NCBI GenBank assembly: GCA_004431415.1 | Contig: QPMI01000153.1 | Location: 1 to 61,693, forward strand | Direction of reading: 5' to 3' | DNA length: 61,693 bases | Origin: Cyanophora paradoxa CCMP329 | Lineage: Eukaryota > Plantae > Glaucophyta | Shown: one piece after another, positions 36,079 to 43,800 of the stretch | Position numbering within the stretch: position 1 is the first letter of the stretch | Layout: each line of letters opens with the position of its first letter | Position numbers and translations under genes: made by a program | The notes under the pieces: model-generated | What the model was told of the DNA's origin: nothing | Seen by the model: only the letters and a program-made list of their open reading frames with translations | The model's database searches: none

Positions 36079-37761
36079 TCAGGGGCGGGCGTGGTGGCGG
36101 AGGCACTCGACGACGCCGCGCTGGAAATTGAGGGCCCCCGCGGCGATCGCGCAGTGCCACAGCTGGTGCGAGTTGAACGCGTAGTCGAAGAGGCCCCCCG
36201 GCCGCACCCGCTCCGGCAACTTCGTCGCGTAGAAGACGACCCCCGCCGCGTAATACGCGTACGTCTTCAGCGGGCGGTACGCCATGAAGGGCAGCTCCTC
36301 GGGCGTCGCACGCGCCGCCATGTGCGCGAAGCTGCGGGGCGGTGAGGGCGAGGCTGCGGCGGCCGCGGGGGGCGGACCTGATCAAGCCGAAGACGAAGAG
36401 GGACGTCAGGGCGGCGTACTTGCGCACCGTGTGGCCCCCGGCCGCCGCCGGAGACAGCTCCCCGCCCGCCTTTCCCTTGGGCGCTGCCGCCGCCGCTCAG
36501 GCCGCCGGTGGCGGCGGGGGCGGGGCGGCGGGGCGCACGGGGCGCGATCTGGGAGACGACAAAGATTGCGGATCTGGGATAGCGGACATCGGGGCATAAA
36601 GGTAGAGATAGATCTTTACGCAAAAGATAGCGGACAACGTGTGCAGGGCGAGGTCTGTCCACGGATAACGCGTGAGAAGGATAACGGACAACGTGTGAGA
36701 GGGCGAGGTCTGGGCGGCGTACAGATTTTTTGCAGGGCCGGCTCCCCGCGGAAGCCGTAGAGCGCGTAGAAGAGCTGTGCCGCCGCCGCCGCCGCCGTGA
36801 GGGGCGGCGGGGCGGGCGGGGGGCGGGGGGAGGGACCATGGATGCGGTGAAGGCGTGGACGATGCCGAGCTGGTCGCAGTACATGCAGGCCCCGTGCGCC
36901 CCCGCCGATCGGCCATGAAAGGTGTGGTAAAAGGCGCTGCCGGCGCCTTAGCCGCCGAGGGACCCCGCCACAAGCTTAAGGCCCCCACATGTACACTAAG
37001 GTTCATCCTCACCTGCTCGCAAAGCAGTTCCACGAGCCGACGACTGCCGCGGAAGGCGCCGCGGTGAGTAGCGAGCAGGGCGGCGCTGCCGGCGGGCGTA
37101 CGCACCGAAGAGGAGGAAGATGGCGGCGTGCTCGGTGCCCCAGATGCCGCGCAGCTCCGTGCACAGGGACCATGCCGCCAGACCCGCGACAAGCCCCGCC
37201 GCCACCACGTGCGTCCCTTCTCGCGCCCCAGCGCTTCAGACGGCGCTGGCCGCGCACGAGAGGCCGGCGGGTGCGAGGCCGGCGCACAGATGTTGAACGT
37301 TTCGTTGTTCAGCTGGAAGGCGGAGTGAAGGTAGTACCGCCACGGCCTTCCCGTGTGCCGGTAGCCGCGTAGAACGTAGGCTGAACGAGACGGAGAACGT
37401 TTATCACTTGAGCACTCGTGACGTCAGGCACTCTAGATCTGTTGAGCGAGGGCGCGTGCGGCGCACGTCTGCGGTTCCACGCGGGGATGCGGGCGTGATC
37501 CTCTGGCAGCGCGAGGGTCCGCTTGCGCGCCACTGCGTCGTGCGCCGCACCACTCGAAACCGCCGCGCTCCGGACCGGGCTGCGGGCCGCGCTGGCGCTG
37601 GCGCCGCGCCGTCGGACGGCGCCGCGGCTCCGTTCGCGCCTGCTGGCCCCGCCGGCGGCGGTGCTGCGGCCCCGCTTGTCGACACCTGCACCTTCGACGG
37701 CGGCCGGCGCGAGCGCCTTCCTCTCGCGAGAGACGGAACGGCTCGGTGGCGGGTCTTTCAT
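36079..37761 (-). CDS. PAQR / haemolysin-III family membrane protein (AdipoR-like)
   Basis: NETFNI, CDQLGIV and FYATKLPERVRPGGLFDYAFNSHQLWH motifs. Confidence 0.88.
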
Positions 37762-37880
37762 CCTTCGGATTGCCCGTCCAAGGGAGGGGGGCCCTGGGGG
37801 GAGGGGCAGAGCTGGGGTACGCAGCCTCGGTGCGGTTTCAGGCGCCGGCTCGCACGCTGGGCCGCCCCTGACCAGCGAAA

Positions 37881-40537
37881 ATGACTCCACAGCCAGCAGA
37901 TTTAGACATCGAGCTCCTCGCGAATCTGCTCCCCGAGAGCGACGCGGTCCATCTGGCCGCGCTCTTGGGGACCGGGCCTCATGACGCAGCTGATTTCATG
38001 GACACATCAGGATCAACCTCTGCAGCCTCTTCATTAGGAATAACCAGCCAGGCGCAGCGCGGGGTCTTGCCCGCTGCCAGGACAGCAGCTGCGACCGCGC
38101 CGAGCGCCGGAGTCGTGCGCCTTGGGGCGCCCACATCCGGAATTTCTCCACGGGCAGCACCTGTGCAGCGCCCCGGCGCGGGGTCGTCGGCCTCAGCTGC
38201 GCCCGCAACACCCGCTGCAGCGCGCACGGCAATGCCAGCGCCGGAGAGCCGGACCTCGTCGAAGCCGGAAAGAGCGGCAGCACAGGCAGCAATCGCGGCT
38301 TTCAAAAACAGCGCGGAGCTGGAGCGCGAGCGCAGTCGAGGAGGCGGTTCGCGAGACTCCAAAGGTGGCGGGACGCATTCAGAGACGGAGAGAAAGAGAA
38401 GAGATTACATGAATGAACAGATAGCGACCTTAAAGAGCCTGGTGCCCGGCTTCGAAGCGCCGAAGGTACGGAGGCCCCATCATAAGAGATCTTCTGAATC
38501 TTCCGCCCACATTCCCGGCAGCCAAACAAAGTCACCATCCTTGGGAAGGCTGTAGAATACATGAGCGGTGCGGTTTCGCTCCCGGGCTTCCTTTTCTGGT
38601 CCTTTTTCTTTTCCCCGGCGGGGGGCTGACAGGTCGGTGGCAGAGCTGACGGAGACGAACTCGAAGCTGCAGGAGGAGACGGAGGAGATGAAGCGCGAGG
38701 TCGAGCGGCTGCGCGCGCTCGTGCTCAACAAGGAGAGCCCGACCCGCTCGGCCGAGCCGCGCGCCGCCGCGCCCAAGCTGAAGACGGAGCGGCACGGGAG
38801 CCTCATCTTCGGGGCGAGCCCCGAGATGGACCTGGAGCTGCACCTCCAGCTCCAGCAGGTGCCGCCGGCGGGCCGGGGCGCGGGGCCGGCGCTGAGGCGG
38901 GGCGGGGCGCAGCTACAGCAGGCGCAGGAGCTGCTGGGGCAGGCGGAGGGGATCGGGCCCGAGCAGCAGGCCGCGCTGCAGCAGCAGGTCGCCCTCCTGC
39001 AGCGCAAGACCAAGAACCTCTTCGACCTCCCGCTCGCCGTCTACGAGTCCGTGCCCCAGATCATCAGGTAACGGCCCCCCCGCCGCGCCCCCGCCCCGCC
39101 CCGCCGACGCGGCCCGCAGCGACGACTCGATCGCAATCCCGGACCTTAACCTGAAGCAGGTGGGCGGGGGGGGGGCAGGGGGCAGGGGGCGGGGCGGGGC
39201 GGGGGGGGCGGGGCTGAGGGGCGGGGGGCCAGTTCATCGCGGCGGCGCTGCGGATCACGATGGAGAACCTGATCGTGACGGACCCGAACATCGTCGGCCA
39301 CCCCATCGTCTACGCCTCCCCGGGCTTCCAGCGCATGACCGGCCCGCCCCCTCCCGCCCCGCTCGCACCCTCCCCCGTGCCCGCCGAGACGCGGGGCGGG
39401 GCGCAGGGTACACGGAGGCGGAGATCGTGGGACGGAACTGCCGCTTCCTGCAGGGGAGCGCGACGGACCGGCAGGTGACGATGGAGATCGGCAAGGCCAT
39501 CCGCGCCAAGCGCGAGTGTACGCCGCCGGCCGGCCCCGGGGGCGCGGCGCGGGGGCGCTGAGAGGGGGGCGGGTGGGGCAGACCTGGCGGAGATCCTGAA
39601 CTACCGGAAGGACGGGACGCCGTTCTGGAACCTGGTGTACATCGACCCGGTGCTGGACCGGGAGGACGAGGTCGTCGTCTTCCTCGGCGTCCAGTTCGAC
39701 ATCACGAGCTCCAAGTCGCGGGGCGACAAGCTCGCCAAGATCCGCTCCGCCTCGCAGGACGCCATCCGCGAGATCGCCCACGCACAGGGCTACACCCCCG
39801 CCGACGCCGGCAACGACTGGCGCTTCCACCTGCCGGCCGCGGGGCCCCTCGGGGCGCGCGTCAAGTCGGAGGTGGGCCTGCCGGTGATGGACGCGGCGCC
39901 GAGCGAGGAGCTGAAGATCTTCCTGGCGTCGGTCCTTCACATGGCGATGCACGCGGTGTGCGTGATCGAGGGGAAGGGGGCCCCCGCCCCCTCCCCGCTC
40001 GACGACTTCCTCGCCCTCGACGAGCCCTGCAAGGCCCCCGCCCCCTCCGTCCGCCCCCCCGCCCCCGCCCCGGCGCCCGCCCCCGCCCCGGCGCCCGCCG
40101 ACGCCGCTGGGGCGCAGGGGCGCGGGTCGATCATCTACGCGTCGCGGGGCTTCGAGGAGATGACGGGGTGGAAGCGGTCGGAGCTGGCGGGGCGCCGCTT
40201 CGACGTCCTCCAGTGCCCGGAGAGCGACGCCAACGCCGTCGCCGCCGTCCGCGAGTGCCTCGCGAGCAGCAAGCCCGGCCTCCTCCTCACCGAGCTCCTC
40301 ATGCAGAAGAAGGACGGGACGCGCTTCTGGTGCGCGGGGCGGCCGCGGGGCGCGCGGGGGCGGGGCGCTGACGGGGGCCAGGAACCTGGTGTTCATCTAC
40401 GGGGTGCCGGACACGCGCGGCGAGGTCGCCCTCTTCGTCCTCCTCAACTTCGACAGTGCGCCGGCCCGCCCCCGGCCCATCCCCCCGCCCCCCCCCCGAC
40501 GCCCCCCGCAGTCACCCAGCACCGCGACGCCCGCTGA
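37881..40537 (+). CDS. bHLH-ZIP transcription factor fused to a canonical LOV domain and a second degenerate LOV/PAS domain
   Basis: bHLH-ZIP: HSETERKRRDYMNEQIATLKSLVP..PNKVTILGKAVEYMSELTETNSKLQEETEEMKREVERL. LOV1: [30 protein letters not shown]...NYRKDGTPFWN...GVQFDIT. Second PAS: IIYASRGFEEMTGW...KKDGTRFWN. Confidence 0.9.
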
Positions 40538-40859
40538 CCGCCCCGCCTCCGCGCCCCCTCCGTCGCCCCCTTTCCTTTCCTTGTATGATTTCCGATGATT
40601 TCTAGCTTCGTATACATAGCGTACATGCATTTTTCTGACCGCCTCTTCCGTTTACGTTGTGGACCTCCCATGGCCGATGATTTATTTGGTAGCTCGCTAG
40701 GTATCAGGCTTCCGTACCCCTGTAACTTCGAGGGCTGGGCTCCTGCGGTGCGACCTTGGGTAGGCCGTCCGACGGCCTGGATCGCCTGCGTGTAAAGTAC
40801 TCTTTTCTCTATAAGGAATTCAAATACAGTCTGCGGGGCTTCGCGATCGTGCCAGGGGC

Positions 40860-43800
40860 TCAAGAGGGCGGGGGCGGAGGGGCGGGGGCTGGGGCGGCGG
40901 GGGCCGGGGCGGGGCCGGGGGCCGGGGGCGGGGCGGAGGGGGCGGGGTCGGGCTTGCGGGTGTGGCGCTTGACGGCCTCGCGCTTGAAGCGCTGCACGAA
41001 GGCGGCGACGGGGATGGTGAGGGAGTCGGGGACGCGCCCCGCCTTGCCCGAGACGCCCTCGAGGCGGCCGCCGGCCTCCTTGAGGAAGATGCGGGTGACG
41101 AGGACGTCGAGCTCCTTGAGGGGGTGCTCGGGGTCCGTCCGCAGCATCGTCTCGCGGATGCTCCCCGCCGTGAGGGAGCCCGTGCCGGGGTCGGCCTCGG
41201 CGAGGGCCTCCTGGACGTCGCGGATGTACTCCTCGCGTTCCTCGAGGTGCTGGGCCCGCACCGTCTCGATGAACGCCGTCTGGTTCCCCTCCTTGTCCTC
41301 TTCGAAGAGCTTCCGGTAGAGCACGACGGGGCCCGGCTGGTCCCCCTCGAGGGCGTCGAGGAGTCCCTGGAAGCGCGCCTCGTCCTTGGCGGGGAAGAAC
41401 TTGCGGAGGACCGACGCGAAGTGCTCCTTCGACATCTTGCCCCCCGTGTCCACGAACTGGCTCGGGCCCGTGTTCGGGTCTGCCCCCGCCCTCAGCCCCC
41501 ACGCCGCCCCCCGCCGAACGGGCCCGGGGGCGCGCACCCCACTTGACGAGGTGGGCGTGGAGCTCCTGCGGGGCGGGGTGGGCGCGCGGGGGGCGGGGCG
41601 GGGCGGGGCGGGGCGGGGCGGGGCGAGCGGACGTCGAGCATGGCCATGGAGGCGAGGTGCACCTCCTCCTCGACCTCCCCGATGAGGATCTGGCCGCCCC
41701 GCTTCAGCATCCCCGAATGTCGCCCAGCACGCCCAGGCGGCGCCCCGGCGCTCGAAATGCCTCCCGCCACCCGAGGGTGCGCGCTAGCCCTCCAAGGCGG
41801 GAAAGCGCGATGGCAGAAACGTGGGCTGGCCTTGAAGAAGACGTCGACGTCTGCGTCGTACGTGTAGCGCTGCGGCGGGCCCGTCACACGGGGGAGGCCG
41901 GCGTCGGGCGCCGGCGGGGGCGGCCGGGGGCGCGCCTTGACGCTGTCGAAGAGGTTGTAGCCCCACTCGACGGCGGCGGCGTGGGTGCGGTGCTTGGAGA
42001 GAAGGTACGCGAGGATGGAGGCGCTCAGCTGCCGCCGGCGCCCGTCACCCCCCGCGCAGGGGCGGGGCGGGGCGGGCGGGGCCGGCGCACGGGCTCCTTC
42101 TTCTTCTGGGCGGCCTTGAACTTCCAGATGGCCTTGATGATGCCCTCCACCTCCCCCTTCGGGAGGCGCCGGTTCTTGATCTTCCCCTCCGCCCGCAGGA
42201 ACTCGGGCACCTCGGGGCCGGTGCCGAGGGCGGGGATGAAGGCATCGTCGCACGGCATCTTCTGCGTCAGGTGCTTCACCTCGTGCTGCAGCTGCCCCCG
42301 CCCCGCCCTCGGCCCCCGCCCGCGCCGGCGGAGGGGGCGGGGCGGGGCGGGGCACCTTCTGGAGCTCGGCGACGAGGCGGGTGACGAGGGCGCCCGTCGG
42401 CAGCGCGCTTGTCCCCTCCAAGATCCGCCGCAGCGCCGCCGGCACCCCCCTGCCCCGCCCCCTCGCCCCCCGCCCCGCACACCAGAGGACGCGCGGGGCG
42501 GCGCACGGGGCGTGGGGCGGCTCGGCGGGGCCTGCGGGAGGGGCCTGCGGGGCGGGCTGGCGCGGGGGAGGCCGTAGGGAGTAAGGTCGGGGCGGGGCGT
42601 CCACTGGGTGCGCATCTGGCCTCGACGTCAGCCTGGAAGGGCGCGGGCGCTCACAGCGGGGACAGAGGAGGCCGCACCTCCTCCTTCTCCTTCGCCAGCG
42701 CCGCAATCCGAGCCAGCGCCTCCCTGTCGCGCCGTCAGGGCCGCTGCGGGGGCGCCTGCGGGGGCGGCGGGGGCGGCGGGGGCGCCTGTAGAGGCCCTGC
42801 ATGACGCCGCTCTCGGCTTGCTGCGCGGGGGTGAGCGGGGGGCGGGGGGCGGGGCGGGGCGGGCGGGGCGGGGCGGACGAGGTCATCGGCGCGCTCGCGG
42901 GACTTGGCGAGGTCGGCGTGCAGCGCCGCCTGCGCCGCCTGCGCCTGCTCCTGCTGCTCCAGCACGTTCGAGAGCTTCTCCTCCGTCTCCCGCAGCCGCG
43001 CCGCCGCCTGGTCGTATCGCCCGTGCCAGTCGTCCGTGCTCGACGCGCTCTCCTTGTAGTGCTTCAGCGCAGCCGCCAGGATCTTGTTCGACTCGAAGGC
43101 CTCCCGCCCCTCGTCCTGCAGCCGCTCGATGTCGTGCCGCAGCTTCTCCACCGTACGCTGCGCCCCGTCGCCCCGCGCGTCGGGCGGGGCGGGGCGGGGC
43201 GGGGCGGGGTGGGGCGGGCGGGCCTCGGCCTCGAGAGCGCGCAGCTCGGTCGCCTCGAGGGCGCGGCCCTTCTCCTCCAGCTGGCCCCTGCGCCCCGCTC
43301 GCGCCGCGTGGCGAGGGCGGCCGGGCGGGGCGGAGACAGGGCGGACTGGAGGCGGGCTATGCGGCCCTCGTACTCGGCCTTCATGCGGTTGACGAGGAAG
43401 AGGGTCTCCTCCTTCAGCGTCGCCAGCTTCGCCTGCACCGGCAGCCTGCCCCCGCACGCTCGCCCCCGCCCCGCGCCCCGCGCCCCCGGCCCCGCCCCCG
43501 CGCACATCAGCCGCAGCTGCTGCTGGTAGTTCGCCAGCAGGCCGTCGTACTCGCGCTTGATCGTCGCCAGCACGGGTTTATACGTCCTGAAGTTCTCGAT
43601 GAAGCACTCTGCGGGGGCGTGAGGGGCGGGGGGCCGGGGGGCGGGGGGCCGCACCGAAGGCCTCGGAGTAGACCTGGAGGCGGGCCTCGCTGGGCTGGTC
43701 GGGGGCGGCCTTGAGGAGCCCCAGCTCGCGCTCCACGTACGTCTCCAGCTCCTGCAGCAGCCGCGGCTTCGGCCCCGCCTTCGGCCCCTCCGGCCCCATC

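Follow-up and report, generated by a model that had tools for sequence, protein, structure and literature searches.

Does a single gene of a glaucophyte alga encode both a DNA-binding domain of the bHLH-zipper type and a photoactive LOV domain, and would its product act as a blue-light switch? The question is raised by a locus of Cyanophora paradoxa within the 61,693-nucleotide stretch of DNA analyzed here (the window), which a first-pass annotation had read as a bHLH-ZIP-LOV fusion analogous to aureochrome. We find that one mRNA encodes a bHLH-zipper, an intact LOV domain (LOV1) and a degenerate second LOV domain (LOV2), and that this layout is conserved in four genera. With confidence somewhat above even, we read the product as a glaucophyte transcription factor that is regulated by blue light through an aureochrome-like switch, all in a single chain.

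Gene structure and transcript

The gene lies at 37881-40537 on the plus strand and has a CDS of 2,040 nt in 11 exons, encoding 679 amino acids. An in-frame stop at 37869 stands just before the first ATG (37881) and the stop codon is at 40535-40537, so the interval first proposed was correct at both ends. The transcript and its parts are:

37814..40839, plus strand: whole spliced transcript (67-nt 5' UTR, 2,040-nt CDS, 302-nt 3' UTR; the true transcript ends may differ)
37881..38465, plus strand: exon 1 (aa 1-195), acidic/Leu-rich start, Ala/Ser/Pro-rich low-complexity arm, basic region, helix 1, loop
38352..38402, plus strand: basic region (aa 158-174) with His166 (38376), Glu170 (38388), Arg173 and Arg174 (38400)
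38522..38567, plus strand: exon 2, loop end and bHLH helix 2
38644..38858, plus strand: exon 3, leucine zipper up to about 38711, then linker
38913..39067, plus strand: exon 4, Gln-rich helical hairpin (aa 270-315) that starts in exon 3
39120..39159, plus strand: exon 5 (40 nt), start of the LOV1 N-terminal cap helix (A'alpha-like)
39233..39341, plus strand: exon 6, LOV1 cap helix and first strands, followed by the GC-AG intron
39407..39517, plus strand: exon 7, GRNCRFLQ with Cys395 (39439-39441), and Gly412 (39490)
39582..40048, plus strand: exon 8, remainder of LOV1 with Asn427, Asn437 and Gln458 (39692), J-alpha-like helix (39722-39784), linker, LOV2 start from 39899
39899-40516, plus strand: degenerate LOV2, with cap helix and first strand in exon 8 and core in exon 9
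40118..40329, plus strand: exon 9, LOV2 core with Phe604 (40199) at the cysteine position
40382..40455, plus strand: exon 10, last LOV2 strands, with Leu667 and Asn669 replacing Gly and the signaling Gln
40512..40537, plus strand: exon 11, final residues and stop codon

A 2,409-nt contig (X15 record 2) covers 37814-40839, and its length is the sum of the two UTRs and the CDS, exact to the base. An equivalent contig of 2,395 nt (X17 record 4) comes from another study. Because a single spliced contig spans the bHLH and LOV exons, both are on one transcript. The check proposed with the original reading, whether these exons are joined, is thereby answered by assembled contigs of two studies, which rule out separate genes and an artefact of splicing by eye. 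Eight of the 10 introns appear as joints, each supported by three or four runs. The remaining two, introns 4 and 8, coincide with repeat-masked sequence, and their boundaries were deduced from record coordinates (intron 8, from contig coordinates, is 40049-40117, GT-AG). The introns are 52-76 nt long and nine are GT-AG; the one GC-AG intron, 39342-39406 inside LOV1, is supported by contigs. The RNA label of the four runs is a guess, but exactly the introns are missing from them, whereas DNA runs contain 0.99 of the words.

Searches used the exons of the gene model one at a time. Exon 8 matched P0001, the EukProt Cyanophora paradoxa protein tig00000622_g2630.t1, which agrees with every exon and was then used as the reference (aa 177-679). 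This public model begins at Met177 (38409) and misses aa 1-176. Since Met177 is within helix 1, the model has no DNA-binding basic region. The omission is an annotation error that hides the nature of the gene, and surveys based on the annotation would therefore misread this copy.

Promoter and neighboring genes

Two minus-strand genes adjoin the locus:

36079-37761, minus strand: gene for a PAQR/haemolysin-III-family membrane protein, head-to-head with the LOV gene
40860-42886, minus strand: convergent multi-exon gene that adjoins the LOV transcript at its 3' end (40839); no Pfam match from its pieces

The start codons of the PAQR and LOV genes (37761 and 37881) are 120 nt apart. With transcript contigs ending at 37796 on one side and starting at 37814 on the other, the two genes share a very small promoter. 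The PAQR/haemolysin-III gene has one intron, at about 37381-37466, seen as a joint. By eye, the same minus-strand gene region contains short imperfect tandem repeats at 36580-36720, with units like GGACAACGTGTG, in a stretch that is less GC-rich.

The window contains 15 E-boxes where 9.9 are expected. For autoregulation, we found no E-box excess and no CACGTG enrichment in the window, and no CACGTG in the 120-nt promoter; the nearest CACGTG (37206) and TGACGTCA (37419) are both within the neighboring gene.

The bHLH-zipper

Exon 1 alone gives a Pfam HLH match of 29.8 bits (curated cut-off 20.7). A His-x3-Glu-x2-Arg-Arg basic region, a full HLH and a zipper immediately after helix 2 are all present, which bears out the earlier reading of a complete H-E-R bHLH with leucine zipper; the His codon is CAT at 38376-38378, as had been given. 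H-E-R is retained in all 10 family members checked. The zipper has four heptads with Leu212, Leu219, Met226 and Leu233 at the d positions, and Asn216, at an a position, is invariant in 10 of 10 aligned members. AlphaFold models helix 2 and the zipper as a single long helix. The structures nearest to the bHLH-zipper of the Cyanophora orthologue are USF2, MYC2 and Max (E 1e-8 to 4e-7, over domain and zipper), and the resemblance to ARNT/BMAL1 is weaker (E about 1e-5 to 1e-4). Dimers of H-E-R bHLH-zipper proteins bind CACGTG, and we predict from the residues that this is the target of the 679-aa protein. The Ala/Ser/Pro-rich low-complexity arm in exon 1 is a candidate activation region. The Gln-rich hairpin is confined to the two Cyanophora sequences of subfamily A (see below).

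The intact sensor domain, LOV1

Exons 8 and 9 have Pfam PAS_9 matches above the cut-off. LOV1 matches the LOV domains of phototropin and aureochrome with E about 1e-30, in an alignment that covers the cap helix too. It has the PAS fold, the GxNCRFLQ motif and the adduct-forming Cys, whose codon (TGC, 39439-39441) had been placed correctly in the first reading. The residue set is complete (Asn394, Cys395, Arg396, Gln399, Asn427, Asn437, Gln458), including the ring-contact Asn, Gln, Asn and Asn and the signaling Gln (oat LOV2 449, 454, 482, 492 and 513). The Cys is retained in 12 of 12 family sequences, and LOV1 is 71-84% identical to orthologues in other genera. A J-alpha-like helix follows LOV1 in the predicted model. 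A LOV domain with this set of residues binds flavin and forms a Cys-C4a adduct, and we infer the same binding and photochemistry for LOV1 from its sequence.

One contact departs from the usual pattern. Of the Arg pair that contacts the FMN phosphate (oat LOV2 451 and 467; typical, not strictly defining), LOV1 keeps the first and has Gly412 in place of the second. Arg or Lys occupies this position in 88% of 455 other LOV cores and Gly in 2%. The replacement may weaken FMN binding; we found no paper that addresses what loss of the second phosphate Arg does. The second LOV of eight fern LOV/LOV proteins (P0153-P0157, P0162, P0163 and P0166) shows the same rare Arg-to-Gly change, with the Cys motif kept.

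Ile361 and Ile441 of LOV1 correspond to the V416I/L496I pair of oat LOV2, which gives that domain a recovery tau of 1,000 s vs 55 s (PMC3867380). By extrapolation from this other LOV domain, dark recovery of LOV1 is probably slow, on the order of minutes, and the protein would therefore integrate light and not track flicker.

The degenerate second domain, LOV2

The bHLH, zipper and photochemically complete LOV domain of the first-pass layout stand, and a degenerate LOV domain at 39899-40516 had been overlooked. Its best match is a phototropin LOV domain (E 9e-11), and the predicted model has a LOV/PAS fold (pLDDT 88; Z 17-18 to LOV domains). It carries the substitutions Asn>Arg, Cys>Phe, Arg>Asp, Asn>Met, Gly>Leu and Gln>Asn, so that the Cys motif and flavin contacts of photoactive LOV domains are absent. 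In subfamily A, LOV2 has lost six flavin contacts, including the Cys and the signaling Gln, in all four genera, and has gained conserved surface features. Between genera it is 46-51% identical, with a loop insertion and a changed hairpin in common, which reads as a change of job and not as decay.

A glaucophyte family with three subfamilies

The same domain order is found in relatives from four genera, Cyanophora, Glaucocystis, Gloeochaete and Cyanoptyche. GenBank AML78367.1, a second sequence from Cyanophora, retains the basic region. Members score 544-671 bits against the family profile; phototropins come next with at most 312 bits, all without HLH. Trees resolve three subfamilies. Subfamily A has an intact LOV1 and a degenerate LOV2 in all four genera, and tig00000622_g2630 belongs to it, with the family cap helices, the intact LOV1 and a degenerate LOV2 with the loop insertion. 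In subfamily B both LOV domains are intact (C. paradoxa member tig00001042_g6598). In subfamily C, LOV1 has the Cys and LOV2 has Gly at that position. The Arg-to-Gly change at the second phosphate contact of LOV1 is found in subfamilies A and B.

The LOV-core tree places 19 glaucophyte LOV cores on one side of a branch and 109 others on the other side (SH-aLRT 96), from a short alignment with a midpoint root, an outgroup made up of matches from this analysis only, and Cyanophora A LOV2 below the inclusion cut. This grouping suggests that an internal LOV duplication and a triplication of the gene predate the split of the glaucophyte genera.

We found no relatives from outside the glaucophytes in the best 120 matches of the family-profile search, among 356 fetched proteins, or among the matches listed from at least 80 metagenome loci, and the ESM Atlas has no cluster for the family. 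A search with the bHLH alone matched four family members and nothing else. The searches were limited in length and words, and absence of the family outside glaucophytes is therefore not proven.

GenBank entries of the family are titled 'putative LOV domain-containing protein', and the AML entries probably stem from the LOV catalogue of Glantz et al. 2016. The family is therefore catalogued though uncharacterized. The earlier view of an uncharacterized architecture holds insofar as we found no study of it, and needs amending in that the sequences were already deposited as putative LOV proteins and this gene represents one of three subfamilies. No description of a bHLH-LOV protein was found in the literature covered, which did not extend to the tables of Glantz et al. 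2016, where the architecture may be included. 'HLH' LOV proteins named in reviews were rejected as a prior description, as the term there means the HTH protein EL222.

In 7 of 10 sequences of subfamilies A and B (P0006, P0007, P0013, P0152, P0266, P0267 and P0269), the linker between the two LOV domains contains a K[KR]xR motif resembling a nuclear import signal. In subfamily C it stands ahead of LOV1, and it is missing in Cyanophora subfamily A. Light-gated nuclear import is possible in the relatives that bear it.

Proposed mechanism and alternatives

We infer that light controls DNA binding by this protein. The zipper would hold the protein as a dimer, as in aureochrome. The flavin adduct at Cys395 would act through Gln458 and the sheet to release the cap and J-alpha-like helices. 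LOV1, once freed, may quit an inhibitory contact, pair with the LOV of the partner chain, or both, and this would raise occupancy or activity at E/G-boxes. The adduct would thus alter DNA binding or the partner choice of the zipper dimer. LOV2 may serve as a PAS contact module devoid of flavin and determine the partner, either self or a paralogue of subfamily B or C. The aureochrome mechanism involves an effector-before-sensor order, a cap helix and a linker of >30 residues, all matched here (PMC4721966). The linker from zipper to LOV is about 100 aa and poorly modelled, and the coupling is therefore not evident from the model.

An unlikely alternative, and the one that survives best, is an obligate heterodimer with a paralogue, comparable to White Collar-1/-2 or CLOCK/BMAL1, in which light alters partner exchange, import or turnover and not DNA affinity; such a pair could possibly supply the light input, or the positive arm, of a clock in glaucophytes. 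In Glaucocystis and Gloeochaete the three subfamilies, whose LOV states complement one another, are found together, the import-signal-like motif is found in most A/B sequences, though not in tig00000622_g2630, and C. paradoxa lacks PRR, TOC1, ELF3/4, GI and ZTL (PMC6374488). However, the full basic region and own zipper of tig00000622_g2630 suffice for a homodimer. We regard as less likely again the broader proposal that the three subfamilies form a light-sensing heterodimer system, independent of CLOCK/BMAL1 and White Collar, which would serve as the chief blue-light input and possibly also as the core of the daily clock in glaucophytes; tig00000622_g2630 would then be the subunit that combines one working sensor with one disabled contact domain.

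It is more doubtful still that LOV1 is a weak flavin binder, or a sensor of redox state or flavin supply, and that the protein acts essentially without regard to light, as a bHLH-PAS-PAS factor whose contact domains derive from LOV. The Arg-to-Gly change at the phosphate contact would fit this, as would the flavin pocket already gone from LOV2 and the LOV-type PAS domains of potassium channels, which are not light sensors (PMC8017926). Against it, ring-contact and adduct-forming residues are all retained across four anciently separated genera, and the fern proteins with Gly at this position still carry the Cys motif. It is very improbable that the start of the EukProt model is the true one and that initiation at Met177 yields a basic-less, ID-like HLH-zipper acting as a light-controlled dominant-negative partner, as contigs in all four runs begin near 37814-37829, upstream of the in-frame ATG at 37881, and the basic region is kept in the second Cyanophora sequence and all orthologues.

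Significance

Among primary algae, glaucophytes make up the third branch. Phototropins are missing in this group (PMC4532919), plant clock loops are mostly missing in C. paradoxa (PMC6374488), and the loops that control the glaucophyte daily rhythm are described as unknown (PMC6704402). With neither phototropin nor most plant clock loops in glaucophytes, the family is a testable candidate for blue-light input. If the favored reading of a light-regulated factor is true, the bHLH-zipper joins bZIP, GATA and HTH among the DNA-binding domains that LOV controls in nature, the bHLH-PAS-PAS layout arose again from LOV parts, and the family offers a natural template for light-controlled regulation of E-boxes.

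Comparison with known systems

White Collar-1, the fungal LOV-PAS-PAS-GATA protein, has its LOV domain first and a C-terminal GATA zinc finger, with no bHLH. The glaucophyte protein likewise combines a photoactive LOV with a non-photoactive PAS domain in one factor, possibly with a similar heterodimer logic, and no Pfam match to a GATA zinc finger was found in exon 1 or aa 177-679. The order of a bHLH followed by two PAS-fold domains is shared with the animal bHLH-PAS proteins ARNT, BMAL1 and CLOCK and with diatom RITMO1. Unlike the animal factors, the glaucophyte protein has a zipper, and both of its PAS domains match LOV first; they are LOV-derived, with Z 17-18 to LOV vs about 13 to ARNT/HIF PAS-B. 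The likeness to animal factors is probably convergence. The sole Archaeplastida case named in the RITMO1 paper is a two-PAS protein of Galdieria (PMC6600994).

Phototropins and the LLP/PLP proteins of green plants have a tandem LOV pair too and are the next-best database matches. Phototropins carry a C-terminal AGC kinase, whereas the glaucophyte CDS ends directly after LOV2. LLP has two LOV domains without an effector, whereas the glaucophyte protein has a DNA-binding domain and does not group with green LLP. The two glaucophyte LOV domains are nearer to each other than to green LOV1 or LOV2, and the tandem therefore arose separately.

Single-chain LOV transcription factors predicted only from sequence are also on record from marine plankton: LOV-WRKY, LOV-HSF and homeobox-LOV, all uncharacterized, with other DNA-binding domains and in other lineages (PMC8017926). 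The marine survey of such factors names bZIP, HSF, homeobox and WRKY types and no bHLH (PMC8017926).

Aureochromes are likewise single-chain LOV transcription factors with a zipper-type DNA-binding domain N-terminal to LOV, a cap helix ahead of the LOV core, a J-alpha helix after it (model-based here) and intact photochemical residues. They differ in having bZIP and one LOV, in photosynthetic stramenopiles, whereas the glaucophyte protein has a Pfam HLH, no bZIP, two LOV-type domains and a predicted CACGTG target, and the glaucophyte LOV cores form a separate group in trees. In its likely mode of action the glaucophyte protein resembles an aureochrome, but it does not belong to that group.
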